This document shows positions 3,056 through 63,425 of a stretch of 64,000 nt of DNA, piece after piece. The DNA comes from Paragordius varius (Eukaryota > Animalia > Nematomorpha). A program made the translations under genes and the position numbers. Under the pieces are notes generated by a model. It did no database searches, had not been told where the DNA came from, and was given only the letters and a program-made list of their open reading frames with translations. Location: positions 2,418,001 through 2,482,000 of the forward strand of contig OZ176052.1 in assembly GCA_964247055.1 (NCBI GenBank). The letters run 5' to 3'. Every line of letters begins with the position of its first letter. Within the stretch, counting starts at the first letter, position 1.

Positions 3056-4969
3056 ATGTTGTTTTTTGTGTTATATGTCTGGTTTAACATATTATTTTCC
3101 CTGCTTAATGCCGATTGTTCAACTTATGGAATTTGCAAAGATGGTGGAAAAATGTTACCATGCAGTTATACTGGATCTCCGAAAACACTTGACCCAAATA
3201 CTACAAGTTTGTTGAGAGATATATGTCCACAATTGCCTGGAATAGATGGTTTATTTTTTAAATTTTATATATAGATAATAAAGTAAAAATGTGTTGTGAC
3301 AAAGAACAAATTCAAAATTTGGCGAAAAATATGAAAATACCAACTTCACTTTTACAAAAATGTCCCGCATGCCTTCAAAATTTTAAGAACATATTTTGCG
3401 GATTAACATGTCATCCTGAGCAATCAAAGTTTTTATTTGAAAAAAGTGTCATGGGCAAAACTGTTCATATTTTGGAATACCATATAACGGATCATTCCGC
3501 ACGTGACATTTATGGTTCTTGTAAGGATGTTTCCTTTCTCAATAGCAAAGTCGTTTACTTGATGTGTGGAAAGGCTGGGAAAAATTGTGATTATGAAAAG
3601 TTTTTTGACTTTTTAGGTCATAACAATCAAAACCCGTTAACGATTAATTTCGTGTTTGAATCTTTATCAAACTCCGATTCTCATCCTATATCTAATGTTG
3701 AAAAAATTGTTGATCCATATAATATCCCAGTAACACCTTGCAATCAACCAGTCAATAAGGTAATAATTTATAGTTTGATATATACAAATATAGGATTGAA
3801 TATCCATTAAATTATACTTGAAGGCTAAGACTACTTATTAAACAACAGAAGTTTTGCTTAAAAATTGTAAATTGTAACTTTTAAAACTTTTTTATCATCG
3901 TTTTTAAAATTGGGTGATAACCACCTATCGTGAGATAATTTATCAAAATTCTAACGCTTTTCTTAAAAAACATCAAAAAAATGTAGTATTATGGAAATTA
4001 TATCAGCGTTTTTGGGAAAATATTTAAATTAATATAGGATATAAAAAGTTTAGAGATGTTTATATACTTTAATTACCAATTTATATATATATATATCTAT
4101 ATCTATATATATTGATAACATTTTTTATTTAAAAATTTATTATTAATAAAACGATTAATTACTAATCTTTTGTTTAAACAATAATTTTGCGATTTTTTTA
4201 GACTTTATGAGTCATTTTTAAGCCAAATTTTGGGCAATTATTGTACATAATTGTTTTACCTTATACGATGGTTTGGTTTTTAATGTGCATGTTTTTATCT
4301 TGTGTGTTTATTTCAAATTCCTTTCTCATATACTAGACAGACCAGACTTCTTTTTGTTATTGACATAAAATGTATATTATCATAGTAATTGGAAATCGAT
4401 ATTTATAATTTCTTACTTACTTTTTTTATTTTATGCATAACACAATTTTCCGGATGTTATATAGTTGATAAAACATAAATATTACTTATCATATTTATGC
4501 ATTAATTTATAAAGGTAAGATTAACAAATTTGGTATTATATATATATATTATGGTATATGCGTGCGCATTTCTTAAAATGTTTTAAAGTTTTCTTTCTAG
4601 TTTAGTTTTAATACATAAAGCGGGAAATAATGATATATTATTGACAATTGTGACATTTGTGGTAAAATAACTTTTGTATGCCTAAATTAATTGATTTAAT
4701 GGAAATTTATTTTTCCTAAAATATCATTTGTTACCTAGGTATTTTTTTTATATTTTTGGATAAGTTTGGCTTTAAACATCTACGAGCCTATTAACTGTAT
4801 TATATGTGTTTAAAAATTTACAATATATATTAAAATTTTTTAATATTAGTGTTTTTTTTAAAGTAAATAATTATCATGTTTTCAATTATATGATTTAAAT
4901 TTTACCAGTGCAATAAATATTTAGTTAAGTTTTAAGTTAAAAAGACAAATTAATTATTGTTTAATTTGC

Positions 4970-5007
<38 letters not shown>

Positions 5008-8000
5008 TATATAAATTGTATTTTAGCAATTAACTTATATTGTTCAAATTTTATTTATGATGTTAAGAAACATGTAAATTTTCACATTATTGTTATGAGT
5101 TAATAATAAAAATGAGCGCAATTTTAAATTAATAAAGAATTTTTCAAAAATTTTAAGTTTCATATTATGCATATATATATATTGCATTGTGGATTGTTTA
5201 AAATTTAAATTATCTACATATATTTTTTAAAAAATGATTAATAAATTAATTTTAGAACTAGGCTTCATACATATATTAGCGGTCCTTAAACTTTCTTAAG
5301 GTGTGATTTATTTTTTGATCCATGAGATCATTTTTAAAATAAATTTGCAATGAACAACTTAATACCTTTATATATAATAATATTTAAAATCTTTAAATTA
5401 TTTTTTTTTTATAAAAAGTTGTGTTAAATTATTTTATTTAAAAGTTAACTGGAACGCCCAATGTTGCGCACATATAATTTTTATTTTTTTCAATCATAAA
5501 TAAAAATGCAGAATTAAAACAATTATCATAATGAATGAATATAGAAATATCATCGAAATAGATTTAAGTAGATTAGAATTACTGGAAATTTTTTGGTATA
5601 AATATATTGAGCATTTTAATATACTTTTAAATGTTTGTTTAATATGTTTATCGGGAATTCGAAATTAGACGTAACTTGTCAAATATTTTTTATAATGCCA
5701 ATTTGGCATGATGACCCTTTTTGAGAAGAATGAAATTGATTTTTCAATTGAATTACGATTGATATTCAGATTTTTCAATATTGATTAATTATTTAAATTA
5801 TTGGTTCACATTTTCAAAATACCCGAATTAGTTGTAAGTTTATAGGTTATCAAATTTGTTATTTAATAAGAAGGACTAGATTTAAAAATCGAAAACGTGC
5901 ATTATAATTATATTAAAAGTGCATTCATTAGATGGGTGCACTCCATTTTTTATAAAAACTTACTATATTATAAGAGGGAAAAGGGATGACTTTATAACCA
6001 AGATTGATCATAATTATTGTGCCCACGTTTAAATTTTAATAATTTTATATATCGAAAACATCTAAAATATTAGCTCTTAAATTTAAATATCCACATAAAA
6101 TTTTAGAATGGACAAAAGGTGGGCAGTCCATGTGACTGTAAAGATTGTGCTTCAGCCTGTATTGACCCTATGCCTGTCTTACAACCAGATGGACCTGATA
6201 GCGATGAAGACGGTTTCTTATGGTGGTACATTTTTGATTCTGGTATAATTTTTGAAAAGATAATTATAACTTTTATATACCATTTACAATTCAAATTCAT
6301 CTTTGAACAATTGATTTACTCCCTTGAACATATATACCACTCACAATTTGAACAATTCAAATTCATTCTTGAACATATATACCATTCACAATTCAAATTT
6401 ACCCCCTTGAACCATTCAAATTCACACCCCCTTGAACAATTCAAATTCACACCCCCTGAACCATTCATATTGACCCTATAATAAATTATGTGTTTTTTAA
6501 GATTGAAAATTACCTGTATTTTTTATCATCCTTTTAAAAAATGATATTTTGTTTAAAATTAAAATTATACGGAAAAATAAATATACTAAGCCATAAAGTT
6601 TATTTCATATTAATAATAATGAGTTATATAATAGCGCGAAAACACATAATTGTTTTTTAGGGGTAATTTGTATTGTTCAAGAAGATGTGAATTTGAATTG
6701 TAAAAATGGTATATTAAATTTTTTTTATAAAGAAGAATGAGTAAAAACACATGTTAGTTTTTTTCTAAGGGTCTGCATTTTGCTACCAAGTTTTTTTATA
6801 AATATGGTTGTTTAGTAGGGACCAATGTTTGTAAGGTAAAAATTTGTTTTTTTACTGCATTGTCAGTGTCGTATAATAGATAAACTTCACTGAAACTTTG
6901 TTTGTTTAAGAATAATAAGGTTGGTTATTTAAGAATAATTTTTTTAATTCTGAAATGTATTATTTTAATCAGTCATCTTAAATTTTATTTTTTTCTTTTT
7001 CACGCAAAAAATTGGATGGAGGAATAAAAGTAATTAATATTGAGTTTTTTTTAAAAATAATGTACAATATTTATAATCAACAAATGAATAATTTATATCG
7101 AGATTATATACTAACCATAAAACTCAGAGATAAGTAAGAAGTTCATTAATTTTATAAAATTTGGCATTTGTATGTATACTTTTATTCAACGATTAATGAA
7201 TTATTCTGCCAGCAAAATAACTTATAAATATAATTTTTAATTATATTTTTGCAACAAACTATCATATTATACAACGATAGAAAATATAATAAAATGAGAA
7301 CTTAAAAATCGATAATTTTAAATAATTCTTATAATTTTACTTAAAAAATATTTTTTTTCTGTGTTTTAGGAAGTCCCTGGAGACATACTATAGCAGGTAT
7401 GGACGCTATGATATTCATTATGACGATGTGTTTTGGCTGTTTTGTCCTTGTATTTGCCTGTGCGCTGGCTTGGAATGCCAAAGGTGGCGCTTATTTTTAA
7501 TGCTCTTAAAATTTTTTATAAAAAAATTGTAGAAATATTTTTTAGATAAGTTCATAATAATAAAAATAATTTAATATTTTTCAAAGGTATTTTATTTTGG
7601 CCCAATGTTCAATATGTGTAATCTAATTTCTATTATATTGAATTTATATAAAAAATTATGCTAAGAAAGATTATAATTTATGTTAATTTGGGTAGTTTAA
7701 AAATTTTGATAATCCATGCAATTATTAAAATCTATTATTTTATGCGTTCAAGTAAAAATCAAAATTAAAAAGATAAAAAACATAAATCATAGTAGTTTTA
7801 AAACCAAGTATTTTATACAACCTTTATTTTTTTATGAACAACCCTTTGTTTTGTCGAAACGAAGAATAGAGATGTAAATTAGTAATATATGGGTTAAGTA
7901 TTAATATAAATCAAAAATATGTTTTTTTCCTTATAATAGAATATATTATTTTTATTTATATATATTTTAGCTTCGAATTCAACTTTTATTTCTACGGCTT

Positions 8001-11000
8001 TTGAAAGGGAACCAGATGCATTGAAAAATTTGTTGTTGAGCCAAAATGGTACAAATACTGACAATGATGCTAATATAAATGGTAATAATAATCGATTTAC
8101 GGCCCCTGTATATGCTAATGACCAATTAGATGGAACTGGTATAATTTTATACGTATTATTGGGAAAAGATTATAATTTTAATTTTTGAAGGATTTTGTTT
8201 GTTTCTCATATAATAAAAATAAGAGATAAAAAACATAAATGAGTTTTGATAGATATGTATATTGTATGGTATAAAATGATATTTTTTAGGATATATATCT
8301 ATGAGAGTTTATTATTATTTTGGTTGAAATTTTGATATAAATTTCAGGATTTCTTTTATATATATATATATTAGAAAGATTGTTAATTTTTAATTAAAAT
8401 CATCCTCATCATATTAATTTTTTGTAGATTTGGGTGCGGATAATTTTTTTTTATTTTTTCCTTTTATTCATTTATAATGTTTTTTTGTCTGTAAAAGACT
8501 AAGAGTGATTTTTGGCTCATAAAATTTTATTTTGTCAGTTTGAAATAACTAAAATATTTAACATAAAATCTTTTTTTATAATATAAAACGTTTTAGATAA
8601 GGTTATCATCACGGTTTACTTAAAATTTGCAGACCTAATCCATATTTTATTATGTATTATACGAATTTATATATTTTATTTTAAATCATAGGTTTTTTGT
8701 CACCCGCTTCCCCGGGTCATAAGTTACGACAGGCTTCAGATAAATTCCTGAAAGAATTTGTTATGTTAAGACGTACAGGATCTCCTCTTCATAAAATATC
8801 GCTTAGGCGAAAAGGTGGTCCTGAATCCAAAAGTACATCAAAATTGCTATTGGCTGGGAATGGTAATACGGATACAATGAACAGTAATAATGGTGAGAAT
8901 AATATCAAGAATAATGAAATGCTGCCTCCTAATGTAAAAATGGTTGGAAAAAGTGAGTTTTAAAGCTAACTAAACTTTAAAATCTAGAAAATTTGGGTTA
9001 TAATAATGTTTAATTTGAGTGTATTTTATGTATTTGGGTAAAAACTCAAAAACAATTAGGCTGTCAGATGCCTTTTATAAATATTTATTTTTAAATCAAT
9101 GCCAAAACTATGCAAATTAATAAATAATAGGAAAATGCTTTATTTATAAACTTTTGTTTCAATATATCGACATTTATAATTTAAGCGTTTAAAATGCAAA
9201 AATTACATTTTTTATTCATAAAATTTCGCGAAAATTTGTTTAAGGGGGTACCTTTTTGAATGTACGACTTTAATTAAAGTATTAGTTTTTTTACTAAAAC
9301 GCATAGTTTTGCGCATTTAATTTTATGATTGTTTTTGCACAGATGAAACAGTATTTCTATCGTCTCATAAAAATTCTACCCTGTTTGGTATTGGTGACTC
9401 TGGTGATAATCACGATGATATAATTGCAGCATCACAATCCCCCTTTCAACGTTACGTTAGTAAACGATTTCGTGATTGGGCTTTTGTATGCGCTCGTTAT
9501 CCTGGAACCATATTAACACTGGGTATTGTCACATGCATTATCATGTCTTGTGGACTAACGCTAATGCGTGTAACGACAGATCCTGTCGAGCTTTGGAGTT
9601 CTCCACAAAGTCGAGCACGCACTGAATTGACGTACTTTAATGAACAGTTTGGGTAAGGATTGTATATCTTTTGAAAGATTTTAAGGGTAGAATTGATTAA
9701 AAAAGTCGGTTAAGATATTGTAAGGATTTACGGGTAAAATTAAATTGATTTTTTTAGCAAAAGAGTCTGTCTGGTAAATTTGGACAAGATTTTATTATAT
9801 TTATTTTTGAATTGGTAAGCCCTAAGTTAATCAAGACTTTAAATAGTTTAATGAATTTTGACTTGAGATAAATGTATCTTGGGTAAGCCCTCATAAACTT
9901 GAACTTTATTAAGACATGTAACAAGATTAACTCTATTGTAGCTAGATTTTGCTTATTACTAAATTGGCGGGTGTAACTTTAACTTTTAGGGTCCGACATT
10001 AATACGAGTTTTGGTAAGTTAATTTTATTAATAAATGCAGGGTTGAAAGAAAATGTATTGATTGTAGGCGTTTTATAAAAAAATAACCATACATATTTTC
10101 AAATATTTGATGGAAATAACTCCCTTATTTAGGCCATTTTATCGGATTGAACAATTAATTCTCGTTCCCACTGATCAATCGTCAGTCATGTATGGTGATA
10201 AAAGTTTTGGACCGGTTTTTAGAAAAGAGTTCTTGTTACAAGTAATTTGCCTTATGATGCATTTTACCACCATTTTTTTCCGAAAAATATTTTTTTTACT
10301 AATTTTTAATTTATAGTTTTATAGAAATTTTTTTCACATTGATATTTAATTGCAATTATAACTAAACATAAATAGTAAAAGACATTGGCCAATAACCTAT
10401 CATATTGGATTGCGAAATAAGGGATTTAATATGTAAATTGGTAATATATTCAATTATATATTTTACACTGGTTGGTATTCATATAGGTCATATGAAAAAA
10501 TTATGGATAAAAAATATGGTTTTTTTTCTTAAAAATATTTTCTTTCATTTAATATATTATTTACATTCATTTTTTAGTTTATTTAAAATGTATATCAACT
10601 TATTTTTAACAGGCATTATCATTACAAAAAGCCATTTACAATATTAAAAGCTCCGTATCAACCAACGCCTTACATAAGAATAGAACAGTCATTACACTTT
10701 CTGATATCTGTTTTACACCCCTGAGCCCACTAAATACGAATTGTACCGTGCAAAGTTTGTTTCAATACTACCAAAATGATGTCGATTCATTGTTGACCGA
10801 TATTACGACCAATAAAATGCAACATTTCGATTTTTGTTCAAAGTAATTCCTTTTTTGTAGATATTTTTTATAATTTACAATCATCAATATATTTATTGGT
10901 TTTTTAATAAAAAAACCTTTGTAGTAAAAAATAATTACTATAAATTAATGTTGGATATGCAAAGAAATTTTTTTATTTTTAAATAAAAATCCATATTTTA

Positions 11001-13467
11001 GAAATCCCTTACTTTCTGACTCTGCATTTGGTGACAAACCTTGTTTAAGTCTTTTTGGTGGGCCCATAAATCCTTGGTTTGTGCTTGGAGGTTTCAAAGG
11101 TTATTATTTGTTATAATATATCCAGTTTTTCATACTGTGTATAAAAATAATTTTATATATAAAGTTTGCATTTTTATCTAATGCTTTTTTCAATAAGTTG
11201 ATTTTAATTATATAGAACTTGAAAAATACGCGTTAATACAAATAAAGAAAAAAAAACGATCTAAATTTATTTTTATCTGAATTTTATATGCATATTTTTG
11301 TTTTTTTAGGACGGTTCATTATAAAAAATATATGGTTTTAGGTTTTTGTTGTAGATTTTCCAACATATTGATTTTAACAAAGAAAAAAAAGTTTTATCTT
11401 TAATATATCATATGTTTAAATTTAGGTGATGAGTATAGCGGTTCAACAGCTCTAGTCATAACATTTGTGGTCAATAATGCACCTTCCAATCAACTTTTGG
11501 CCCAGGCTTGGGAAAAAGAGTTTTTAATTTTTTCTTCTATTAAATTTTTTCTTTTTTTCTAAAAGGTAAAATTTTATACTATTGACTTTTTTTAAGGTTT
11601 TTTAAATTAAAACCTGCGCTTGTTAGCTAATGTTAATCATTAGGCACTTTTTCGATTTAATAAGGTGGAGTTATATCGTTTATAATTGAATGTACATTGT
11701 GTTTATCCAAATAGATAACATTAAATGAATGATATTATCAACGAGAACGAATATTTAATGTTAAAATAATAATCAGAATTCTCGTAAAATTTGTTAAATT
11801 AAACTATATTCAAAATTTTCAATACACACATGGTAGTATTTTTTTGCTGGATGAAATAAAAGCAAAAGAAATAGTATTGATAAAATATAATTAAAACAAA
11901 ATATAAAAAAATAATTATAAAAATCATATACACGTTTCCGATTTTCAAACTAGGTCCCTAGGTTTTAAGTTATAATCGTTTAAGGTTAATCATAAACTTT
12001 TGCTTTCCAGAAATATGTAAATTTAAATTACATATGACTCTTTTATAATTGATGAGTTTTTAAAAATACAAATCGCTTATTAATCTATAAGTTAATGCTA
12101 ATCATCATGCAATGTTTTTAAAGGGAAGTCTACATTTTTTATAAACAATTAGTTTAGGAGTATTTGGTAGAAAATAATCATTTTTAATAAATTCCATATT
12201 TTTTTGAAAAATTTTTTTTGCAAAAAACTTAATTTCATAACATCATTTTATTTTATTTCGATGCAGATCATGAGCTTAATATTTTTTCTCACATCACCTG
12301 AAAAATCTATATATAATTTTTTATTTTACCCATTTAGATTTTTGATGTTTATGAAAAATTACAGCAACCCATTGTTCACTGTTACTTATCAGGCTCAAGT
12401 ATAAGTTTTTTTATATTATAAACATCTAATATAATATAATTCTTTTTGCCAAAAAATAACGATTGAAAAAAATTATGATTTAGTTTTCAATTTCAAATAT
12501 AATATTTTTTTTAATATTTTGAATTAATGTGCTATTTTAGCGTTCAATACAAGATGAAATTGAACGGGAGAGTCAAAGTGATGTCAACACCATATTAATC
12601 AGTTATTTCGTTATGTTCCTTTATATATCCATCGCTCTAGGCCATTTCCGTAGTGCTAAAACATTTCTGGTATTTTATTTTTTCTTAATACAAAGTTATT
12701 ACAGGGTATTAAATTAAAATTATTACGACGACAAAGCATAAAAAAGGAAAATACGAACATTTTTTTTGCAAAAAAAACAACAACAATGTTATATAATTTA
12801 TGTATTGGTTATCGAAATAAGGATATTAATGGAATAACAAGCGCACTAAATTGCATATATATTTCACATTTGTAATCATAAATTAGGATCAAGAAATATG
12901 AATTGCAAAAAAATAAGGCTTTTACTTTGTTGTGTTGTTTAATAATGATTTAGATGTTTCGATAGATTATTTATAACTTTACCTTTTATTAAAGATTCAC
13001 GGAAAATAGTATCATTTTCATTAAATAATATAAATTTGTATGAATATTCTATTGATTGTGCTTTTAAAGTTATATCCCTATTAAACCAATTTTTTTTATA
13101 ATTTTTGTTCATTTTTAGTTTAACTTACCATTCAAAACTCTCTCTTACCTTAAAAAAGATGTCCCAATTTGGATATAATTAATTTTGATACTTTAAATAT
13201 TTAAACCAAAAAATCATATATAATTTTCCAGATTGATTCTAAACTTTCGATTGGGATGGGGGGTGTACTTATAGTGCTAGCCAGTGTTACCAGTTCGCTA
13301 GGAACGTTTTCTTACATTGGAATACCGGCTACGTTAATTATTATGGAGGTTGTTCCATTCCTTGTTTTAGCTGTTGGGATTGATAATGTTTTCATCATGG
13401 TACATCAATGTAGGGTAAGGTTTTTATATATAAAATTAGAAAATATTTGTTCATTTGTATTACATAG

Positions 13468-13512
<45 letters not shown>

Positions 13513-16079: not shown

Positions 16080-16116
<37 letters not shown>

Positions 16117-18460: not shown

Positions 18461-18493
<33 letters not shown>

Positions 18494-35242: not shown

Positions 35243-35274
35243 TTTTGGTACGGTTTACATGTGAAGTCCTTCGC
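35243..35274. promoter_or_regulatory. 32-bp spacer between the divergent BYSL and NOC3L start codons; putative bidirectional promoter core
   Basis: TTTTGGTACGGTTTACATGTGAAGTCCTTCGC lies between CAT (35240-42) and ATG (35275-77), with central palindrome ACATGT and E-box CATGTG. Promoter function is inferred. Confidence 0.7.
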
Positions 35275-41200: not shown

Positions 41201-41952
41201 AAAAATGTCTGCGGGCGATTCAGCAAAAAAGTTTTTATCACGCAAACAGTTTAAGGTAGTGATTTTTAAAGATGTTTTTGATTTGGTGTATGATGTGTCT
41301 TTTTTAGTTTTAATAATAAGGGATATTTTGCACGGTTAAAGCTTAATTTTTTGATTCCAAATGCAGTGTTTTGTAATACTTGAGACAAATATTTTACTTT
41401 TTTAATACCATGCTATTTGGTTTTTTAAACACAAATTATCATTCTTTTTTGTGGTATGACAATGAACCACCATATCGATCTAAAAAATTCGAACCTAAAA
41501 TAAATCATTGGTTACCGATATTAAACTCATAATATTTTTATCATCTTTATTTTTATTCTTTGAATTCAAACAATAACTTACTATTTAAAATAATCATTAG
41601 AAATCTAAGGCACTGGAACAATTTAAACGTGAAGTTGATACATTGGGAAACGCGGTATCCCTTAATTACAATAAACATAAAAACGATGCAACAATATGTA
41701 ATACCATCTTCACCATATACTTTAAAATTTTACGGAGTTTCCATCAAACTTACCATACAAATAATAATGATAATAATTTAAATGATGACAACACAGTCAT
41801 TGATAATAAGCGATTAAGTGGTAAAAGTATTGCATTACTTTCCGCAGCTCTAAGGGGTCTGGCTCAGTTTGCTCGTTTGATTAACATTGAAATGTTTCAT
41901 GACTTGATTGATACTTTGTATCAAATTTCAATCAATAAAGTAATTACGTGGC

Positions 41953-41995
<43 letters not shown>

Positions 41996-50000: not shown

Positions 50001-50893
50001 TTCCAATATTCTTAACCTTTTAGACTATCTATTGTAATGATTGTGATTCAATGATACTTCTTAATATGGGCCCTTCAAACATCTCCTTAAATGGTATCTT
50101 GTCATCTAACCAAGATCTACTGGAAAACACAGTAACGAACTCCCTCAAAACGCTAGAAAACAAAATGGCACACTCAACTGTAAATGGGAATGTTGAAATC
50201 TCTATGGGTATACCCTATGTCATAGATGTTAAACCATTGCATATTGCAACACCACCTACAAAACCAAATGATTATATCCATAAAATTATTGAGACAAAAC
50301 CTAATGTTTCAACTTCACCGCCTACCTCAACAAATACACCAATAAGCACTAATGTTTCAAATGTCCCCCAAAATTCAATATACATACATAATGAACAACG
50401 TTATTACACTGTGGTTTATATGTTGATGTCACAAAGCACGACGACCACTTTAAAAACTCTTACAAACTTATTACCTGGAAAGGATCTAAATGCTAAGGGA
50501 GATTCACTAAAAACCGAGAACAATAATTTTACTCGGGAGATGAACACATTAATGTATGCACAAAACGTCTCACACATTAGTCCATTTCATCTTTTGCTGC
50601 TGATAAGTTCGTGTGCATTATTTATTGTGACACTGCTGCTTATCAAATATCGTGATACTATACATTGTGCGATACGAAGAAAGCATCAACCTACATACAA
50701 TCATGGCAACCATTCTAACAATACAAACTTTAACCGTACACACCTGCATGATTTTTCGGGACTTAGATATCAACCATCAATTAAACCGCCCAATAGGAAT
50801 GATATCATTACTTCATTCAATGTTCATGAAAATAAAATGATATATGCCGAATCTTACTTGCCAAGCTATGAGCAATGTGTTGCGGAAAAATAA
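47040..50893 (+). CDS. Jagged/Serrate-derived type I membrane protein lacking C2/MNNL, DSL and all but one EGF repeat, 582 aa. Exons: 47040-47171, 47773-47818, 48697-48858, 48972-49117, 49288-49506, 49586-49759, 50024-50893
   Basis: Signal peptide (IIIGVLFTMICLG); one 6-Cys EGF (CGIKAC..C..CHCLPGFYGKFC); VWC DCNKCVCRMGIVACSSIIC; Jagged-type juxtamembrane block C-x7-N-x6-GL-x5-C; T/P-rich stalk; TM LLLLISSCALFIVTLLLI; tail ending LPSYEQCVAEK. Phases consistent (1749 nt). Confidence 0.8.
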
Positions 50894-51102: not shown

Positions 51103-52613
51103 TTATTTTGGGTTTGACACAGCTGTTACCACGATTTCATCAAGTTGGACGGAAAGAGGCATACGTAGAGCACTCATTAGGGCATCTGAAACATCTTCGG
51201 GTCTTAGATAAATTTTACTTGCAAAAAATTTATCGACTTCGGATTTGTCTAGAAAAATTTAAAAAATATTAAATTATAATTCTATTATTGATATAAAATA
51301 ATTGGCAATCTGGAGTTGAGTATATCCAAAAAACTACGTAAATTTTATCAGGCCATCAGCAATTTGTGTCAACTTTATTCACTTAATAAAAGAAAAAATA
51401 ACATTAATTAACATTTTTTTAAAAATATATGAATCTTTCAAAAATGGAATGTAAGATTGTTTGTATTGCCATTGGTTGCTGGGTAAATTTCACTCCAATT
51501 AAAATACATAACCAATATAGTCATATTATTGAGACACATATTATGTGCAAAATGAGTTTATATATAAATTTAAAACATGCAGTCCCCCTCTTCTCTGCTC
51601 AAAAACAAAAAAGTCTATGAAAAAACTTTTATTACCCTTGACCACTACTGACCTCCGTGCCACCCGTAATTTTACTACAATCATGCTTAATTATAACTTT
51701 AAAACAAAAGGTAAAAAACAAACTTGCAATCATTTCTTTGTCCCCCTTTTTGGCCAAATGATCAGCAAAGTTTGTTTTAATCCACCCTGGGCACAGAGTA
51801 ACTACTCTGATACCCCTAACATTTGGATGGTATTCATTCAATTCACGGCGTAAACATTGAGTCATAGCTGTTATAGCAAATTTAGACGCTGTGTACATGT
51901 GAAAAAATGTATCATTTCCTTCACCATCTTGATTGGGAAATAGAATGACATCCCGACCCACGATACTGCTCACATTAACAATAATTCCATCACGAATCCC
52001 CGCATGAGCCATGAGTATAATGGCTTCTTTAGCGCAAATGGAGAGGCCATATATATTAATTTTAAGCGTTGTCCACCAATGTTGATAAGTTTGTTTTCGA
52101 TTAGCCATTTCTTTTTCGCTGTACGGATCAAGTCCTTTACAATTTTTTTCGCTCTTTAAAAAGTAATCTGGAAAGGCTAAACCCGCGTTATTTATACAGA
52201 TGTGAAGGGCCTTGTACTTTTTCCAAATGTGCGCAAATAGGGCCATAACTTGGTCCATTTTACCCACGTCACATTGTATGGGCTCTATGGTTGTACCGCC
52301 GGCTTGGGTAACTTCTTGTACCAATGGCTACATTACATAAATGATAGTGTAAAATATAAAATTGTAAAGACAATTACAAATATAATTTTTAAACAATTTA
52401 TTTTTAAACTTGTTTTTTTTTTCAAATATAACTTAAATCGTTTTGGGATGCAAAATAAGGAATAGAGAGGTGATCTAAATACTGTATATCAACAATTGTA
52501 CAGGTTGTAGAAAAAAATAATAGGTTTAAAAATATGGTTTATTTATCTACTTATGTTATGTAATTATATTTTTTACTGTATATTTAATATGGGTAAATTA
52601 ATTAGTATATATA

Positions 52614-52651
<38 letters not shown>

Positions 52652-55019
52652 TACTCAAGTGTGATAGTATAAAATTTATTTTTTTATATTTACTATCATG
52701 TTCATAATATTATTTCTATATTCTATGACTAACCATAATGGAAACTTATGGCTTAATTTATATTGATTTATTGTATAAAAAGTCCTTTTATTTATTAATA
52801 TGGAAAATCTTATTAGTCTAAAAAAAGTTTAAAAGTATGCAAACGTTTGAAATTTTAAGTATATCAACGATTTATTTTCCAAAAGATACGATTTATATAA
52901 TAAATAAATAAACAGCTTATCAGTGCCTCAATTTGCAATAATGTTCCCTAATAAATGAACGAAAATTTAGACTAATATTAATATTAAAAATATATTAATA
53001 AAGTTTCAATACTTGAAGTTTGTCCACATGGCGACAAATAGCAATGACTTGAAGTTTATTGAGAGCCAAAGTTTTTGCCATTTCCCGCCCTATTCCAGCA
53101 GTGGCGTTCCGAGCATTTGCGGCGCCCGGGGCATAAAACTCTAATGGCGCCCCCTCTCTCCTCCTCTTTTTGAAAGTTAATAAAAATATAAAGTAAAAGA
53201 ATATTAACGTCCTTAAATGCTTCATTAAAATTAATTTTAGGATCTTGCAATCTATGTTGAACCCTATCGATTCATATAAGTATTAGATCGCAGAAAAAAA
53301 TCAATGTTAAAAAACTGAAATTTAAAACACTCTGTAAAATGGATGTCTCACTTCTTGTTTCACTAGAATTTGAAGTATTTTTACTTAAATCTTCTAATAG
53401 CTCTATCTAATCATCTATTCCCTCAATAATGGTAAGTACTTGAATTCTAGCACTCCATCGGGCTTCAGACTCACGCTTAACAGTTTTTTAGTTTATTTTT
53501 CAATTGGTCCCATCTAATAGTTAAAAAAAGATGGATATTTTCAATTATACCGAAACAGGTCACAACAAAAACATCTTATTTTCTACGTGACTTTTACCAA
53601 ATTCAAGGAACGAGTGTCACAATTAGCAAATATTGCTCGAATTCTTTGTTGAACGCCTGAAATGAGACCCGACATCACAGCTACATTATTGTAGAATTGA
53701 GATCTACAATTTGATAACTAAACATTATCCATATTTAAATTTTCTAAAATTACCTTTTCAATTGACATTGCATCTTTGTTGAATAACTGAAAAAACCCAA
53801 AAAGGATACCTTTATGAGAACTCTATTTTTCTCATATTTAATAAACACCTACCTGGCAACTTAAAAAATTTGTTCTCGGTGCGCTATATCTGCGTTAGAT
53901 CAAATATAAGTCCATAATATTTACTTTTTTAATGACATTTATCAATATAGTTTTAACTCCTGAAGCCAAAAGATGTATAAACCTGTTTTGGATTTTGGAT
54001 GAAACATAGGTTAAAGTGTTAGGAGATTCAAAGTTTCTCATGTGTTCTCCTTCTATTGGGTCAAAAAGGGAGATTTTGGTTGATAATTTCATGCAGGCCA
54101 ATATTCGATGTAATAAGATCGATCAAAAAGTAGGCAACAATAACCATACTCAGATCTGTTCTTTGGTGAATATAAAAACCAAGACCTCTCAACTTCAAAT
54201 CCTTCTTTTTTTACAGACACGTCGAAAAAATCAAGATTGGGGCATTAAACGATGATTTTTTGTTTCAAAGAGATGGCAATCATTTTGATATACTTAAGAT
54301 CCACGAAAAATCATTTCTGTGCGATTATTAGATTTTACTAGAGGAACATTATTATTAGAAAAAGGCGACATCATTACTATATATATAGCGCTTGGAATTA
54401 CTAATGGTATATTTGTAGTTTTCTCATCTCTATATATTGGATCAATAAGGGTTTTGGTGTATTAAAGTTATTTTGTAGGGGTACTGTTATATTTGGGTCG
54501 CATACAGTTTTTCAATGTTAGGGTCAGATATTTTCGTTAAATAACCGTTTCCTATTTGCATAACCGCTGAGTTTAGGCATTGGTATTAGATGAAAAGTAT
54601 TTATAAAAAATACAAGGCTATTATAAGAATAAGAGATAAGGTTTTGAACATAGCGAGAAGTTAAGATAATTTAATTAGAGGCACTAAAAGAATTAACAAT
54701 ATGTGAGTGATAAAGAAACGTTTATCAAGCGAAATAAGTTTTTGTTGAAGGGAATAATGAAAGTTGTTTTTTGCATAATGTTTGATCTTGATCTCATTTA
54801 TATAATTTTTATATAGAAATTACCTAAGTTGCTGAAAAATCTTACTTGAAAGTTGTTATTATTTTTGCATAATTTAAATGTAATTTAAAAAATCATTTAG
54901 GCGCCCCTAAATAACGGCGCCCGGGGCATGATGCACCCCCTTGCCCCCCCATCGGTACGCCTTTGTATTCCAGCCGAGGCACCAGTCACTAAAGCCACTT
55001 TTCCTTGCCATTTTTCCAT
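51103..55019 (-). pseudogene. DHRS11: DHRS11-like classical SDR (293 aa if intact) with exon 1 interrupted by a hAT element; probably an inactivated allele. Coding pieces (minus): 55019-54966, [hAT], 53090-53013, 52327-51724, 51248-51103
   Basis: MEKWQGKVALVTGASAGI|GREMAK, CDV, ICINNAGLA, NVSS, YTASK, LRREL, LCPGWIKTNFA, LRPEDVSDAL. No stop or frameshift other than the insertion. Confidence 0.85.
53099..54965 (-). mobile_element. Decayed hAT transposon (Tip100/ZMYM1-DUF4371-like), 1867 bp
   Basis: TIRs CAGTGGCGTTCCGA / TCGGTACGCCTTTG; perfect 8-bp TSD TATTCCAG (53091-98, 54966-73). Remnants TYVSSKIQNRFIHLLA, NVAVMSGLISGVQQRI..CDTRSLNLV, TVKRESEARWSAR. Confidence 0.92.
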
Positions 55020-55525
55020 AATGTCGAATTTTGATTCAAAAATGATTATTTGATAAATTAACCTTTTAATTATTTTTTATTATCAATTGTTATCGGTATA
55101 TATATAATTTAGTGTACATATACCTTTAAGCTATAAAATATCCCCGATTCATTCTGTTTGATTTATCATGTCTATAAATCACTTTGCGTGATCATTATTT
55201 TTTAATAATCTTCATATATCTTATGTTTTTGATACATTGAAAATATGCATAAATATTTTTATTTTTAAAATATTTGAATGTTTCAAATAATTTTGTTTTA
55301 TATCACTGTTTTGTGTAATGTTTATGCTGATAAGAGTGATTGGTAATATAGTTTAAATATTATAGCTAATACGAATATACCTAATCTATATAGGAATTGT
55401 CGTATAAGTTTTGAAATACATTGCTTTTCGCGTGTTAAAACTTTCATTATAATTTAGTGTTTGTGAAACACTTTAGAGATTAGTCTTAGTTAAACATACA
55501 ATATATATAAATGCGGTGTGTATTA

Positions 55526-55804
55526 CAGTAAAAATTAAAATTATACGGCAAAAAGTTTAAATATAAAGACAATATTTTTTTATAAAAGACAACCATATAT
55601 ATTAAAACCTTAATGTTTCCCATATAAGCTACTTAGTTACAATTGTAAAATATAGAATTAATTGTGTTAGTATTATATGCTATTTCACAATTTGCCATAA
55701 CAAAGAGTTATATTGAAATAAATTATGATTTAAAAGTATGGTTGTCTTTTAGAAATATTTGTCTTATATTTTTACGTTTTGTCCGTATAATTTCAATTTT
55801 ACTG
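55526..55804. mobile_element. MITE family B, complete copy
   Basis: TA|CAGTAAAAATTAAAATTATACGG ... CCGTATAATTTCAATTTTTACTG|TA; CAGT termini with TA TSD, typical of pogo/Tigger-type Tc1/mariner elements. Confidence 0.82.
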
Positions 55805-56979
55805 TATAATTTTCAAACTAAAATAAAGCTATCAACATATTTTCATGGTCGGTAGTCATGTATAATGTATCCTAACGAGGCAAAGCGTAATATATTTGGA
55901 GTAATTTTTTATACAGCATTTTATTTTATTAATTTGAATTTTTATAAAAAATTAGATATTCCCATCTAACTTTTACAGTTTAGTAGTTTTTTCTATTAAC
56001 CATATTTATAATTGGTATTATTTTTTAGTAGTTAATCGTTTAATTTTAGGGATCGAAACTGGAACCCTTTTAATAATAGGGATCGCAAGCTATTCCAAAA
56101 AACTTTTTTTGCGATCTTTAAAACAAAACGCAATAAAATTTTCATGGTTCAAGGCTCTATTTTTATACTGGCTTTGTATCAATGGGGTTAAAAATTTAGA
56201 TAAATAAACCAAAATATAAATCATTTCACTAAAAAACATTGTATGTGATCGAAATTAAAATCCATGTGAAAAAAAACAATATAAGCTCGATTCGATTGCA
56301 AAAATATTTTTTGAAAAACCACAGGTCTACCGTCAACTTTTGATTCTTATAAATGTTCAAAAATTGTATTTTAATCTATTTTCATTTTTGTATAATTATA
56401 TACCTAGTATCCGAAAAAATATCACTAAAATGTAATGTGACCAGATATTTTAGACTTTGGTGGAGTAAAAAATTAAAACATACTTTGCCTGTTTTTACAC
56501 CATCGGTGTGGTATATTACACAGTTTCCACAAAAAATATCCTGATGAAATAATAAAATATCAGGATTATCATGGTGCTTTTGGTTTTAATCTTTACGAAT
56601 TATTTAAAAAAGTTATTTATACTTTTGTGGTTGGTGCTCTGTATAAAATTGCAAAAGGTGCGCAATTTTTTCAAATATATTTTTTGGTGAAAGCTAACTT
56701 TAATTCAAAAAATATTACTAAAAAACCTACATATCAAAAGCTAAACAATATTTTTAAATTTTTAAATGTGGGCTCTGAAGGTCCCAAATTTTTTGGATCT
56801 TTTAAAATGGACTGTTCTCTTAAAATAAACGCAAAATTCCGACATTGTGCATTAATTTTAAATATATGCTATATTTTTATTCAACTAGATATATTTTTCA
56901 AAAATTTGATTTCTAGCACAATGAAGCATACTTCATACTATTTTATGCACGATGGAATTATAAACGGTTGAGGTTTTAT

Positions 56980-56983
<4 letters not shown>

Positions 56984-57038
<55 letters not shown>
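56984..57038. repeat. (TA)n microsatellite, the longest of many (others near 4975, 13470, 16087, 18465, 19510, 20905, 41957, 52610)
   Basis: Directly visible run of about 27 TA units. Confidence 0.95.
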
Positions 57039-57041
<3 letters not shown>

Positions 57042-57372
57042 CGATAATGCTAATTTCTCAATCAGACTTTTGATTATAATAATTGTTCGTTTTCAAATAT
57101 ATGTTATATAAAAATGATGTTTTTTACAAAATATCACCGAAATTTGGAAGCAAACAAACCTTTAAATTAAAATTCTGAATGCTCAACATTTAGAAAAGGG
57201 GTTTTCCTTATATCTTAAGGCGTTATACCGTTTTCATCATGCTTAAAGTTATAAATGCGCTAAATCTCAAATTTGTTTATGCTAAAAATAAGAAAACTAA
57301 TAAAAATTAAAGTTTAGGAAAAAAATTAATATCATACCTCCCACCTGAGTATAGAAAAAGTGATATACTTAA

Positions 57373-58475
57373 CACTTCGATTCAAATTGGGGTATCTAAA
57401 TACACCAGGTTAAATTTAAGTTATGATTTTTAAAAACTACTGAAGGAAACGTGCCCAATTTAAATTTATACTTCCTAATATGCCAAAATATCTAAATAAA
57501 ATTTTGTTTTGAAAAAAAAGTTTCATGTCAAACTACTACGCCATTTTTATTTTACAAAATTTTTGCAAATATCGTCTTCATTTAATTATAAGGGTGAAAT
57601 TAAAGCTAATTTTTTTATTTAAATTACATCTAACATTGAGAGAATTAGAAAAAGCCATTTATTTTGTAATATTTTTCAATTTTACCATTGCACATATGTC
57701 ACGTTCTAAATTTTTACCTTTTGGTTTTAGTTTAACACTTCTATTCGAATTGGGGTATCTAAATACCCCAAAATAAATTTGAGTTAGGATTTTTAAAAAA
57801 CTAAGGAAGGAAGCGGTCCCAATTTAAATTTATGCTTCTATTCTAATAAAAATTATATATATATGCCAAAATATCTTAATAAAATTTTGTTTTGAAAAAA
57901 AATTTCCATGTCAAACTACTTCGACGCCTTTTTATTTTATAAATTTTTTGCAAAATATCGTCTTCATGTATTTTTAAAGGTAAAATTAAAGCTAATTTTT
58001 TATTTAAATTACATCTAACATTGATCGAAATAGAAAAAGCGGTTTATTTTGTATTACTTTTTAATTTTATTATTTCACACAGGTCACGTTGACGAAATTT
58101 TTACCCTTCCGTTTTAGCTTAAAATAAGTAATATCAAGTATTTTTGAATAGAATTTTTTATATATTTCGGTTTATTAATGTTATATAAGTGCAAAATTTT
58201 GGCATGGTTTCGATTCCTTCCATACGTTTTAAAATATTTGATTTTAAACAGGCCTGGGGTATCTAACTACCCCAATTTGAATGACTAAAATGAGTGTGTT
58301 TTATCCAAGTGTTAAAATATGTAATATCAAATATTTTTGCTTAAAACTTTTTATATTTCGGTAATGTTATATAAGTGAAAAATTTTGCAATGGTTTCGAT
58401 TCCTTCCATATTTTTTAAAGAATTTAATTTTAAACAGGCCTGGTATTTAACTACCCCAATTTGAATCGAAGGACT
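57373..58475. mobile_element. Palindromic element with internally duplicated arms, possibly piggyBac-like and non-autonomous
   Basis: CTTCGATTCAAATTGGGGTATCTAAATAC at 57375 (repeated near 57738) is matched by inverted GTATTTAACTACCCCAATTTGAATCGAAG ending at 58471 (repeated near 58260). Left end is TTAA|CAC; right end is degenerate. Confidence 0.5.
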
Positions 58476-59649
58476 AAAATGAATGTATTGTAAGGTTAAA
58501 TTTATGAAAAAAAGGTTATTTTGAAATTATATGCCATATATAATAAATTTTATATAATAGTTACGGGAATAACAATTTTGTATATAATTTTCCGTTTGAT
58601 AATTATAACAAAACATGAACTTTCTAAACCTGATCAAATATTTATTAAAATATCATAAATTGATTAATTTTAAATTTTGAAGCACCTCTTTTTGCGGAAA
58701 CCTTAAGTCAAAGAGCATTAGCCTGATCTTACGGTAGGGAGTCTGTAGTTTCGCCACTGCGCGAAAGGCTGCAATCCTAAGCTTTAAATAAAATATTATC
58801 CAATTAAAAATAAGTCAATCTTAATTTTTTACCGCAAAATGAACCATTTCTTTACAAATTATGGGGTTATTTTTACAGAGGGTACGCTTAAATTCTAAAA
58901 TATTTTTTGAATAAATAAAAGATATTTAAAATAATTTTTTTCAATTTCAAAAAGCAGTACAAAAGTGAGTGCAGTACAGTCGCAGTTTTTTTCTGAAAAT
59001 CCAGTACTGTACTGCGAAAAACAGCCTATCTGGTCACGTTGCTAAAATATATTATAAACTACATATAAACAGCAAAACAATATTTTAGTTTTTTTGCTCT
59101 TAATGAGATAGTCCCCCTGAAATAATCGTAAAAATGCAGGATTACGCGATAAAAACTAAAAAAATGCTAAATTTTAACATCCGCAAAAAATATTTTTTAA
59201 AAATTTATTTTTTAGCATATTGATGTAGCGCACTTCATACTATTTTAAGTTATGATGAAAACGGTTTAAAGCTTAAAAATATATTAAAAAAATACTTTTC
59301 TATATAATTCAATGATGCTGAACATTTTCTCCCTCAGACTTTTAATAAAACATTCACGTCTTCAAATTTATGGTAAATATATCACTAAAATATATAGTAA
59401 AACACGCATAAGCATAATTTTAAAAAAATATCAATTTTACAAGTGGATTTCAACAATCTCAAATTTTCGGACCCGTTTAAAATGGGCAAGAATAAAGGCA
59501 AAAAGGACTATATTACACAGCAAAAATTTAAGATTTATGCTAAATTTAGAATAAATTTTGAAAAAATGGGTAGTTACTTTTAAATATAATTTATAACAAT
59601 ATTTTGGTGGAGCATACCTCATGTTATTTTCGAAGCACGATGGAATTGA

Positions 59650-60269
59650 TATACCATTTACACTTCAAGAGTGTCCTTGAATAGTTCCAGTTGGTCCTTG
59701 AACATTTTAAGTTAGTCCTTGAACACTTCAAGTTTGTCCTTGAACACCTTCAGTTGGTCCTTTGTCTTTTTTGTTTTGTTTTTAACTTTTATCAATCAAA
59801 TCGTATATCATTAATCTATTTTATCGTTTTTAACCTATTTTTTTATTATTTACGATATATTTTAAATCAATATCAACTTTTAATTATTGAGAAACCGTAT
59901 ATCCCTATTAATTTCTTAAAATTATTTTGGAAACTTATAAAATTTTAAAATGTAATTAAAAATATAAGTTTTCTGAGCTATTATTTACGATTTTTCATGG
60001 AAACATTTAAAAGTTAATAATTTTGTTAAATTCGATAAAAGTGTGAAACAAAAAAGTGGTTTTTAAATAAAATATTTTATTTTTAAATGAATAAATATGT
60101 AGTAAATAAAGAAAAATTAGTATAAATAATAAATTTAAAAAATAAATGCATAAATCATGGTTAAAAAATTTAAACATTTAAAGGACTAATTTGAAGTGTT
60201 CAAGGACCAACTTTAAATGTTCAAGGATCGACTTGAAGTCAAGGACACTCTTAAGGTGCAAATGGTATA
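59650..60269. mobile_element. Foldback/MITE family A with 21-bp subrepeats
   Basis: TATACCATTTACACTTCAAGAGTGTCCTTG ... CAAGGACACTCTTAAGGTGCAAATGGTATA; internal sequence resembles 26411-27015. Confidence 0.82.
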
Positions 60270-60480
60270 ATATTTTTAGTTTTTAATTTGTCTCCAGCAT
60301 CCTTTATACTAGGTAATTCTCAAGAAAATTTACCTATAAATTATATTTTTAAGCAAAGTATGCATTTGTCAAAAATATGTTTTTGTTGTCATATCTAGCA
60401 TCAATTATTTTTTATCCCGAAATCTTTACATTTTTGCGCTTAGAAGGGCAAAAATTTTTGGTCCACATCTAAAGATTAAT

Positions 60481-61950
60481 CTATATCTATTTATTAAAAA
60501 ATGGAAAATGCTTGCTTTGTGATCTGTTTCCGGAAAACTGTTAGACCCATTCGAATCCAAATGTCGAATAATATAATCATTAATGAATGCCCCGACAATA
60601 GCTCCATTTTTTTGATTGAGGCTCCCAGTTCGGGCCCACCCCGTATAAAAAACGGTTTTTTTGAAAACAGAAGTCCACAAAAATCGTGTCTTTGAGACAA
60701 TTTTCCGGAAAACGTGTTGGACCATTTGATTTCAAATATGATTGTTTTACTCATTGATTGTGCTGAACATAGTCGGCTTGCTTTTTTGAAGTCACTCTTT
60801 TTACCAGATCCAGTAAAATGCCATTTTTTCAAAAAAACCAAATCGACAAAAATAATTTTTTTCTATTTTTCCCCCAAGGCAGTAAAAATTCAATGAGGAT
60901 TCCAGGTTTCCCTAAAAGGCAAAACTTTTAGTCGTGCGTTTCTTTTATATTAGCTGCTGGGTAAGGAGACCGCTAAAAACTGCCCTTTCATATCGAAATA
61001 GCGTACCTTTGGGGCTAAATTTCAGAATATCTATCAGGCCATATAACTTCCATAGCTGATTAAAATATTACCCGTAACAGGACAAAAATATGGGTCGTTT
61101 TAAAATTAGCCGTTAATTTGGCTCCTCATCCCTGAAAAATGCGTCTCCATAGTATGATTTTTTAGTTTTGAAGCAATATTTTAAAAACTAATGAAAGCAT
61201 GTGGAATCAATCATGATTCCAGGTATTCTCCGTAAAAAAGGTAAAATTTGATCAAGCGTTTTTTTGTTTCGACTCTGGTTAGGGGCCGCGTTAAGCTGCG
61301 GCACCATATCGATACAGAATGCCTTTGGAGCCAATCAGAAAACCTATGAGACTATGTGAGTTCAACAAGGGCCTTAAATATTTATTATTCCGTAATAAAC
61401 ATGTATTTTAGCGTAGGGGTATTTAAATGAATCGCTAGTAAAGTTTTACCCCCTGAAAAATGCACCGCCATAGATCTTTTTAGTTATAAGCAAATTTCCA
61501 AGAACTTATAGGAACAAATGGAATCCGGCAAAAATTTTGCCCAACGCTTTTTATGCCTGCCCTTGTAAGGAGCTACCCGCCAAAAACTTCGCAACTATAT
61601 AGAAATTGCATTGTTTTGGAGCTAATTTACAGAAAATTTATAAAGCCATATCATTAAAAGTTTGAAATATTACCCGTAACTTGTCAGGCGTTTTTTATTA
61701 GGAGTTAATTTGGGGCCTTTATGCCCTAAAACTACGCCATCTTTTAACGATTATTTGTTGAGATATTTTTTAGAATAACCTATGAGACGATGGTATTAAA
61801 GATGATTCCAAATATTTGCCCTATAAAGCCAAAGACTTTAACTCAGCGCCTTTTTCATATAGGTCTATGGGCAGGGGTCTACCGGTTTAAAACTGAGACG
61901 CCATATAAAAATGGCGTAGTTTTGGAACTAACTTTCAAAAACTTAAAAAG
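60481..61950 (-). repeat. Inverted homolog of the 38110-40100 tandem-array element
   Basis: 60481-60640 is the reverse complement of ~39960-40100, and 61780-61925 of ~38130-38275. Internal spacing is 320 bp (e.g. 60975/61295, 61135/61455). Confidence 0.8.
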
Positions 61951-62752
61951 CCTTACGAACACAATAAAAGCTCAAAATAATACCGATAAAAAGGTAAAAA
62001 CTATATAGCTGTTTTTACCGTAAGCTGCCAATTTGGGGCCTTTACACCAGTAAACAATATATTAGTATGATTGCAAAGTTTTGAAAATATAATAAAGCAT
62101 TGTTTAAAAAATCCTATCAGATCATAACTATAAAATAATGTTTCGAAATAATTCACATATATGGATCACAAATTCGCCGACCCTTTTTTTCAAATAGCGC
62201 CTCCACAAGAAATCCGAAAGATTTTCACATTTTAAATAAATATTGCCATTATATTATATATTTTGATCATATTTTTAGTAATAACGCATTTAGTTGCCAT
62301 AATTATTTTCATTAAAAATATGCTGACTAATTTTGCGATTTTACGCGAGCATTTACCAGAAAAATACAACCAACCTTCATATATCTCGTAAGCCCAAAGT
62401 CTTAAAGAAATTTTGATTATTTCTCCGAATATATTATTTTGTTTAAAATATTTATTTAAAGACCATAGGTTTTGTGGCAATGTGAATAAATAATAATGTT
62501 GATGCGTAAAATTTTCAAATCTTCAAATATACTAAAATATAATTATCTATTCTAACTTTAAATTATTATGTTTTATTTATTAAATTTTAATTTTATTACA
62601 GCTTACCACCCTGTGTTTTCGTTAGCTGATATAGATAATTTATTGGCATTAATGACGAAAATTGTATTATGCCAAATGTCAAATCATTTAAGTAAGCAAC
62701 CACATATGTTATCATATGATTATATTTGAAAACAAAGGGCTTATTTTAAGAA

Positions 62753-63425
62753 ATGCCCTGGTACTTTCCGTGGTCTGAAACGTTAGTTTTAAAAGCATAC
62801 CGCTATGTATTAAACCGTTATTTTGGTTTTTATATATCGGAAAAGCTTATTTTAAATCAGTTGGATATAGATATATCATTAGGAACTAGTTCGATTAAAG
62901 ATGTATCCCTCAATATTGAAGTAATAATATATTTTATTTAGAACATAAATCAATTCTTACGTGATTTCAACATTCCCTTGGAATTGGAAAGCGGATTTGT
63001 GAAAAATGTGTACTTCAAAATACCCTGGTCATCAATTTTTACTTCTGCTTCGGAAATTGAGTTGATTGATGTCGACCTCATATTTCGATTAAAAAATATT
63101 TCTGATAACAAAAAAAGTATTTTTTCTACTAACTACTAGAATTAGAAATCCATGTCCCATGCATGACCGATAGTGTGGCTCTTGTAAAAGAATATTTGCA
63201 AAAGGATGGTACGAACGTTGATTTTGCCGATAATGATGTGAATAATTTTGAGGGTGTAGAATTGTTCGCTCATACATTAGATTCAAGTTTATAATTTTAT
63301 TTTACATTTATAGTATTAACTCGCATAAAGTTTTTGGCCAAGAATATTAATGTCCACCTAATAATGGACCCCCCTAACTACCCTTCACACAATCAATATG
63401 GATCCTTTAAATTACATATACCAAG
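62753..63425 (+). CDS. ATG2: Autophagy-related protein 2, 5' end only (gene continues beyond the traced region). Exons: 62753-62920, 62942-63116, 63140-63286, 63314-63425
   Basis: MPWYFPWSE..YRYVLNRYFG..EKLILNQLDIDI..G; PLELESGFV..IPWSSI; MTDSVALVKEYL; FEGVELFAHTLDSILTRIK match the ATG2A/B chorein-N region. Confidence 0.92.
62921..62941 (+). other. 21-nt micro-intron (ATG2 intron 1)
   Basis: GTAATAATATATTTTATTTAG. Its terminal TAG is an in-frame stop; removal gives VSLNIE-NINQFL. Confidence 0.9.
63117..63139 (+). other. 23-nt micro-intron (ATG2 intron 2)
   Basis: GTATTTTTTCTACTAACTACTAG, containing a CTAAC branch-like motif; removal restores the frame to MTDSVALVKEYL. Confidence 0.88.
63287..63313 (+). 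other. 27-nt micro-intron (ATG2 intron 3)
   Basis: GTTTATAATTTTATTTTACATTTATAG, with an in-frame TAA; removal gives AHTLDS-ILTRIKF. Confidence 0.88.

Follow-up and report, generated by a model that had tools for sequence, protein, structure and literature searches.

In a survey of 51 animal genomes, introns shorter than 30 nucleotides (nt) were found only in Myxobolidae and Dicyema, and hairworms were unmentioned (Hadjez et al. 2026, PMC13644364). Microintrons of somewhat greater length have been described in parasitic flatworms. In Opisthorchis felineus, intron lengths have three peaks, that of the microintrons at 37 nt and the others at 90 nt and 3 kilobases (kb), and it was proposed for liver flukes that intron definition operates near the 5′ end and exon definition further on (Ershov et al. 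2019, PMC6530080). Gyrodactylus salaris introns at ordinal positions 1-2 are dominated by a 32-nt mode and those at later positions by a 58-nt mode (Hahn et al. 2014, PMC4040987). In the present work, we analysed a 64,000-nt stretch of the genome of the hairworm Paragordius varius (assembly GCA_964247055.1, contig OZ176052.1, positions 2,418,001 to 2,482,000 of the forward strand; hereafter, the window), in which four genes, NPC1, BYSL, NOC3L and ATG2, open with one to three GT-AG introns of 21-29 nt (micro-introns) and continue with long introns. Unless stated otherwise, coordinates are positions within the window.

This layout resembles that of the parasitic flatworms in that a sharp short-intron mode stands apart from a kilobase mode, the shortest introns adjoin one another at gene 5′ ends (ordinal positions 1-2), and a second short mode appears further along (~58-90 nt there, ~79-140 nt here). 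In both, moreover, the genome is transposon-rich, and default minimum intron lengths make gene finders miss the short class. The differences lie in phylogeny (Platyhelminthes versus Nematomorpha, which belong to Ecdysozoa), in size (32-37 nt versus 21-29 nt, which places the hairworm introns below the flatworm mode), and in strictness, the flatworm pattern being a statistical enrichment whereas the order here is absolute, albeit in a small sample. In size, the closest counterparts are Myxobolidae (Myxozoa) and Dicyema japonicum, which like the hairworms are parasites and have animal GT-AG introns of 20-30 nt at conserved positions. However, in those animals the genome-wide median is that short and the genomes are compact and transposon-poor, whereas here such introns are a minority class, confined to gene starts, in a repeat-rich genome. 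An earlier note on this DNA had described introns of this size as known generally genome-wide and in compact genomes, which overlooks the 32-37-nt 5′ microintrons that flatworms carry beside kilobase introns. The hairworm layout is the known flatworm-type 5′ clustering in a new lineage, with a smaller size class, and hairworms are a third animal lineage with introns below 30 nt, here combined with that clustering. Our literature search found no hairworm paper on such a 5′ micro-intron layout, and the word "intron" does not occur in the paper on the published genome of the hairworm Gordionus (26.9% GC, 64% repeat, BUSCO 71.6%).

Results

Seven introns of 21-29 nt at the 5′ ends of four genes

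The 5′ ends of the four genes comprise the following features (strand in brackets).

3056-3248 (+): NPC1 exon 1, encoding the signal peptide and the first part of the N-terminal domain; Pfam NPC1_N match over positions 2-46
3249-3274 (+): NPC1 micro-intron 1, 26 nt, phase 1, 8% GC; stop on read-through, flanking exons match NPC1_N
3275-3759 (+): NPC1 exon 2; matches NPC1_N positions 50-207, E=7.5e-37
35102-35242 (-): BYSL exon 1, ATG at 35242; N-terminus aligns with Gordionus bystin
35101-35073 (-): BYSL micro-intron 1, 29 nt, phase 0; same place and phase as a 41-nt Gordionus intron, two codons before DSKL
35275-35402 (+): NOC3L exon 1, ATG at 35275; 74% identity over 27 aligned residues with Gordionus NOC3L residues 16-41
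35403-35431 (+): NOC3L micro-intron 1, 29 nt, phase 2; codon (after YISK) and phase of the 44-nt Gordionus intron 1
35587-35614 (+): NOC3L micro-intron 2, 28 nt, phase 1; position and phase of the 37-nt Gordionus intron 2
62753-62920 (+): ATG2 exon 1; matches human ATG2A residues 4-56, E=2.5e-6
62921-62941 (+): ATG2 micro-intron 1, 21 nt, phase 0, in-frame TAG at its end; flanks match ATG2A residues 4-56 and 59-100
63117-63139 (+): ATG2 probable micro-intron 2, 23 nt, holds TACTAAC; frame shift between open exon frames, GT-AG ends, base composition
63287-63313 (+): ATG2 probable micro-intron 3, 27 nt, phase 1, 11% GC, in-frame TAA if retained; frame logic, GT-AG ends

All seven segments have GT...AG ends, and their GC content (8-26%) is lower than that of the flanking exons (29-37%). 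Retention of any one of them ends the reading frame, in five cases by a frameshift and in the remaining two (21 and 27 nt) by an in-frame stop. When NPC1 intron 1 is removed, the exons are joined without a gap against Pfam NPC1_N (positions 2-46 and 50-207); the same was observed for ATG2 intron 1 against human ATG2A in the PDB (residues 4-56 and 59-100). The N-termini of BYSL and NOC3L are conserved among hairworms only; hence, Gordionus montsenyensis was used as the test species for these genes. Homology backs five of the seven micro-introns (NPC1 intron 1, ATG2 intron 1, BYSL intron 1, and NOC3L introns 1 and 2). ATG2 exons 3 and 4, as well as a short peptide over the third junction, had no ATG2 match in the PDB or Pfam, the two exons being of insufficient length and conservation. 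ATG2 introns 2 and 3 are nonetheless probable introns, on the strength of their base composition and GT-AG ends, a run of four open frames, and the TACTAAC of intron 2. The earlier note had listed seven GT-AG micro-introns of 21-29 nt, each needed for a conserved protein and all starting within ~540 nt of the ATG. All coordinates match, and the starts were measured at 128-534 nt after the ATG; the need for a conserved protein stands for the five with homology, ATG2 introns 2 and 3 restoring open frames only.

It is very improbable that the segments are something other than introns, such as assembly indels, programmed frameshift sites, or sites of ciliate-like developmental DNA removal. Small size is the one property that would suit such an origin, whereas GT...AG ends and very low GC occur in seven of seven, a perfect TACTAAC occurs in one, and the three that could be tested in another species all coincide with an annotated intron of the same phase. 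On sequence grounds, the seven segments read as genuine U2-type GT-AG introns of about 21-29 nt.

The whole window was scanned for GT-AG segments of 18-35 nt whose removal connects open frames, a search that was noisy at loose settings and usable with tight flank limits and AT content. It recovered the seven, and no other segment with comparable flanks and AT content in homology-supported exons. In a control over all 256 boundary dinucleotide pairs, many other boundaries near the real junctions restored the frame as well. The window is strongly AT-rich (22-32% GC per 4 kb), and in such sequence verified exons and non-coding DNA could not be told apart by codon-usage log-odds.

Two side observations concern these blocks. 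In ATG2 intron 2 (63117-63139), the perfect TACTAAC has its branch A at a distance of 7 nt from the intron 3′ end and 15 nt from the 5′ splice site. Most exons between successive micro-introns measure 112-193 nt here, and most in Gordionus NOC3L 122-152 nt, approximately one nucleosome of DNA, in the following exon blocks.

62753-63425: ATG2 block, window
35275-35748: NOC3L block, window
10001-11231: NOC3L block, Gordionus locus

Micro-introns precede all long introns in the window

The remaining parts of the four genes were traced as follows.

3760 to ~23537 (+): NPC1 remainder; first long intron of ~2.3 kb from 3760, then at least 22 further long introns
27224-35072 (-): BYSL exons 2-8, with introns of 3503, ~890, 499, 137, 899 and 418 nt; exon 6 matches human bystin
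35749-43993 (+): NOC3L remainder, with introns of 743, 3433, 491, ~315, 427, 116 and 242 nt; dispersed repeats in introns 3 and 4
63426-64000 (+): ATG2 from intron 4 onward, donor GTATGT at 63426; if exon 5 is 63525-63598, intron 4 has a minimum length of 99 nt

Later introns were placed by heuristic GT-AG models, and the distal NPC1 model is likewise heuristic. The modelled lengths were 79-3503 nt (the shortest being 79, 92, 116 and 137 nt), and none of the ~54 introns traced measured 30-78 nt; the extremes given for these introns in the earlier note were thereby reproduced. Gaps between open reading segments supply lower bounds that do not depend on the models; in NPC1 these were 105 nt or more, and in the remaining genes they ranged from 76 to 3476 nt. 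A 30-codon NPC1 exon that had been missed by our filter was flanked by introns of ~258 and ~414 nt.

Micro-introns make up 7 of the ~54 introns. Within a gene they are contiguous (two in a row in NOC3L, three in ATG2), all of them lie within ~0.56 kb of the ATG, and none stands behind a long intron (0 of ~47). The chance that micro-introns would hold exactly the first ranks in all four genes is 1/23 x 1/7 x 1/36 x 1/4 = 4e-5, or 1.7e-4 when ATG2 is left out. The short-then-long order in the window is real and well beyond chance.

Two other segments were considered as introns and rejected. A 60-nt GT-AG segment after ATG2 exon 4 has a stop directly behind it. The 27-residue N-rich insert of BYSL exon 6 (29106-29186, -), located between residues 164 and 165 of human bystin (chain 7mq8_SZ), has no usable GT-AG and is coding-like.

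The same order in Gordionus montsenyensis

When a NOC3L exon was searched against 1.8 billion representative proteins, the single significant match was from Gordionus sp. m RMFG-2023 (= G. montsenyensis), at ~40% identity. Protein searches with NPC1 exon 2 and with an exon of the SDR gene of the window retrieved no relative belonging to P. varius or another hairworm, and neither an exact look-up of the open reading frames of the window among protein records nor transcript searches for P. varius gave a match. The comparison was made with RefSeq models on GCA_954871325.2, with the locus on OX940786.2, and covered NOC3L and BYSL.

Gordionus NOC3L (XP_065320488.1, 807 amino acids), which maps exactly to the locus, has introns of 44, 37, 47, 36 and 86 nt, followed by introns of 10048, 6669, 2476, 321 and 5240 nt. 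Gordionus BYSL has introns of 41, 47, 42, 44 and 39 nt, followed by one of >5 kb that runs off the examined locus; its spliced translation is stop-free, and the 42-nt intron, itself in frame and stop-free, is for that reason less certain. All three micro-introns that could be tested occupy the same codon and phase in both species, NOC3L introns 1 and 2 corresponding to Gordionus introns 1 and 2 and BYSL intron 1 to Gordionus intron 1. The later NOC3L introns share positions but differ in class, introns 3-5 measuring 47, 36 and 86 nt in Gordionus versus 743, 3433 and 491 nt here. Between the species, only introns at the distal edge of the short run change class. NOC3L introns 3 and 4, which are long here but short in Gordionus, consist of 40-59% dispersed repeat.

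The two hairworms are therefore alike in these genes, in intron positions and phases, in the short-then-long order, and in the head-to-head arrangement of BYSL and NOC3L. They differ in the floor (36-47 nt in Gordionus versus 21-29 nt here) and in the extent of the run (four to five introns over ~0.9 kb versus one to three over at most ~0.56 kb). The short-then-long order is common to both hairworms, and the point of the switch shifts between them.

An explanation by detection or modelling would hold that micro-introns were sought only where an N-terminus needed rescue, and that distal ones, in frame and stop-free or beside tiny exons, were missed. By our estimate, about one in six micro-introns would be in frame and stop-free and so hidden from frame analysis; the distal NPC1 model is heuristic, and a 30-nt candidate exists in the Jagged-like gene described below. 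However, distal regions are better conserved, and a frame-breaking micro-intron would be easier to spot there; Pfam and PDB alignments of distal exons contain no 7-10-residue inserts bounded by GT-AG, and the window-wide scan gave the seven with no comparable others in homology-supported exons. Moreover, because the same order is found in an independent RefSeq model of Gordionus, the polarity is not a product of gene modelling here. Such an artefact is thus improbable.

Two further observations were made on this gene pair. The head-to-head start codons of BYSL and NOC3L are separated by 32 nt here (35242-35275), compared with 3.9 kb in Gordionus (locus 6107-10001); because of the 32-nt spacing, very short or overlapping 5′ untranslated regions are implied for the two genes in P. 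varius. In addition, the first published Gordionus NOC3L model, CAK9302082.1 (538 amino acids), equals residues 270-807 of the RefSeq protein, without exons 1-4 and most of exon 5. The 269 missing residues span four introns of 36-47 nt (OX940786.2 locus 10001-11013), and the truncation would fit a gene finder that missed introns of that size.

Two genes without confirmed micro-introns

The window also contains a Jagged-like gene and an SDR gene, the latter with an inserted transposon.

47040-50890 (+): Jagged-like gene, no confirmed micro-intron; modelled introns of ~1.5 kb, 92, 170, 79 and 264 nt
51106-55019 (-): SDR gene, true introns of ~685 and 427 nt
53100-54965 (-): hAT-like DNA transposon in SDR codon 18, 1866 nt (53091-54974 with the duplication)

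In the Jagged-like gene, a six-cysteine EGF is complete only with the strong acceptor at 48696, which is out of phase with the strong exon-1 donor at 47172. For the first intron, the gene could use a weak acceptor, another donor located at 47104, or an additional exon of 82 nt with a 30-nt intron behind it (region 48585-48696). The last option yields a frame-consistent 30-nt GT-AG candidate at 48667-48696, behind a 1.4-kb intron. At 33% GC, this candidate exceeds its putative upstream exon, the reverse of what was seen for the seven micro-introns, and it is unlikely to be a true intron. The earlier proposal that no micro-intron stands behind a long one is upheld by the modelled introns (P ~4e-5), with this candidate as a point of doubt.

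The apparent first intron of the SDR gene was rejected as an intron; it is a transposon insertion flanked by a 9-bp target-site duplication, GCTGGAATA, with terminal inverted repeats CAAAGGCGTACCG / CAGTGGCGTTCCG, and it constitutes a disruption. The element sits 54 nt into the coding sequence and splits the TGxxxGIG cofactor motif. Because no GT-AG pair would cut it out cleanly, the SDR allele is probably broken. Open frames inside this transposon and inside BYSL intron 2 had no Pfam match. The earlier suggestion that the genes lacking micro-introns are the less housekeeping ones concerns these two genes only, one of which is disrupted by a transposon, and it is weakened to that extent.

Repeats, transposons, and a possible origin at the DNA level

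Animal genes are mixed in the window with dispersed repeats, hAT-like elements, and fragments of long interspersed nuclear elements (LINEs). At least one family of dispersed repeats, reaching as many as 8-9 copies within this stretch, occurs in NOC3L introns 3-4, in BYSL intron 3, and in the region upstream of ATG2.

294-2457: LINE fragment, endonuclease and reverse transcriptase
23696-24607: LINE fragment, reverse transcriptase
35749-40228: dispersed-repeat region
30206-31095: dispersed-repeat region
55100-62700: dispersed-repeat region

The 5′ micro-intron blocks contain no dispersed repeats, and the long introns carry them. Upstream of NPC1 and ATG2, transposons were found within 0.6-0.9 kb of the start codon.

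As an outgroup, NOC3L of the nematode Aphelenchoides bicaudatus carries a uniform set of 15 introns of ~41-47 nt and a further one of 71 nt, without polarity. These minimal introns are of the size of the Gordionus 5′ class, but the nematode genome is compact, and its gene has neither polarity nor a long class. Because a compact nematode has uniformly minimal NOC3L introns, it is plausible that distal introns changed by growing.

These data bear on an origin of the layout at the DNA level, by which a deletion bias would shrink all introns, selection would remove transposons within ~1 kb of the promoter (e.g., through silencing that spreads to the promoter or early transcript ends), and distal introns would fill with repeats. 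The repeat-bearing long introns beside repeat-free 5′ blocks would be expected from it, as would distal growth in a hairworm genome of ~64% repeat, given the uniformly minimal nematode gene; moreover, long first introns occur in the two less essential genes. However, the shortest repeat-free distal introns end at ~79-140 nt, for which a single deletion floor does not account, and the strict order, with no micro-intron downstream of a long intron (0 of ~47), is left unexplained. Transposons are also found 0.6-0.9 kb upstream of the NPC1 and ATG2 starts, and one lies 54 nt inside the SDR coding sequence. An origin of this kind is possible, and we would entertain it tentatively. Two earlier suggestions of the same type lose ground: a 5′ zone favouring deletion, because the ~79-140-nt end point of distal short introns favours a position-dependent floor, and exclusion of transposons near transcription starts, which is weakened by the 1.87-kb hAT-like element 54 nt into SDR and by the long first introns at ~+130 nt in both Jagged-like and SDR.

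Discussion

We consider that a position-dependent limit on splicing is the best explanation of the layout, with a probability of roughly 0.5. Under such a limit, the smallest spliceable intron size would be set by position in the transcript. Ultra-short introns would be removable only near the promoter and cap, where they would be recognised across the intron during transcription; further along, recognition would take place across the exon, with a floor of ~80 nt. Growth of an upstream intron by transposons would push any micro-introns behind it out of the permissive zone, and insertions would be tolerated only at the distal edge, such that the run of short introns would erode from its 3′ side. 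Micro-introns would be missing behind long introns, we propose, because the run erodes only from that edge. The changes of class between P. varius and Gordionus, all at the distal edge, fit this erosion. A position-dependent floor is preferred over simple deletion bias because the repeat-free distal introns end at ~79-140 nt and never reach 21-29 nt.

The Jagged-like gene bears on how position would be counted. Its coding positions 275-640 nt hold no confirmed micro-intron, although a distance measured along the spliced messenger RNA would place them inside the zone. Because micro-introns are missing there, behind long introns, it seems that transcribed distance, or a place upstream of the first long intron, is what counts. 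In its most specific form, the proposal is that hairworms may have two intron floors set by position, ~21 nt within ~0.6 kb of the transcript start and ~80 nt beyond, which we advance only as a tentative generalisation. The earlier note had proposed two splicing regimes; two size classes, their strict order, and the likeness of a second hairworm fit that idea, while the mechanism itself is one that we infer.

Several points weigh against a position-dependent limit. The evidence is that of DNA, from which both splicing and its dependence on position are deduced, and splice-site motifs are alike in micro-introns and long introns, with no sign in the sequence of two modes of recognition. The sample is small, comprising two genes in Gordionus and four here; of ATG2, which is cut off by the window edge, only the first four introns are seen, and its introns 2 and 3 are without homology backing. 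The 30-nt Jagged-like candidate would break the rule if it were real. Lastly, the long first introns at ~+130 nt in the Jagged-like and SDR genes indicate a zone that is permissive rather than obligatory.

For the annotation of hairworm genomes, default minimum intron lengths may truncate or lose genes, which could inflate apparent "losses" of universal animal genes and lower BUSCO scores. For the biology of splicing, introns of 21 nt and 3.5 kb can share one gene in hairworms, which makes it possible to ask directly what determines minimum intron length and whether this limit is linked with the cap or with early transcription, and the same intron-size polarity in two unrelated phyla of parasitic worms provides a natural test system. 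If a position-dependent limit is true, the very smallest introns would be excised in a way coupled to the cap or early elongation, and transposon-driven growth would proceed only from the distal edge. If, in addition, the layout arose independently in flukes, early transcription and the spliceosome's steric limit would seem to be connected in a general and as yet undescribed manner.

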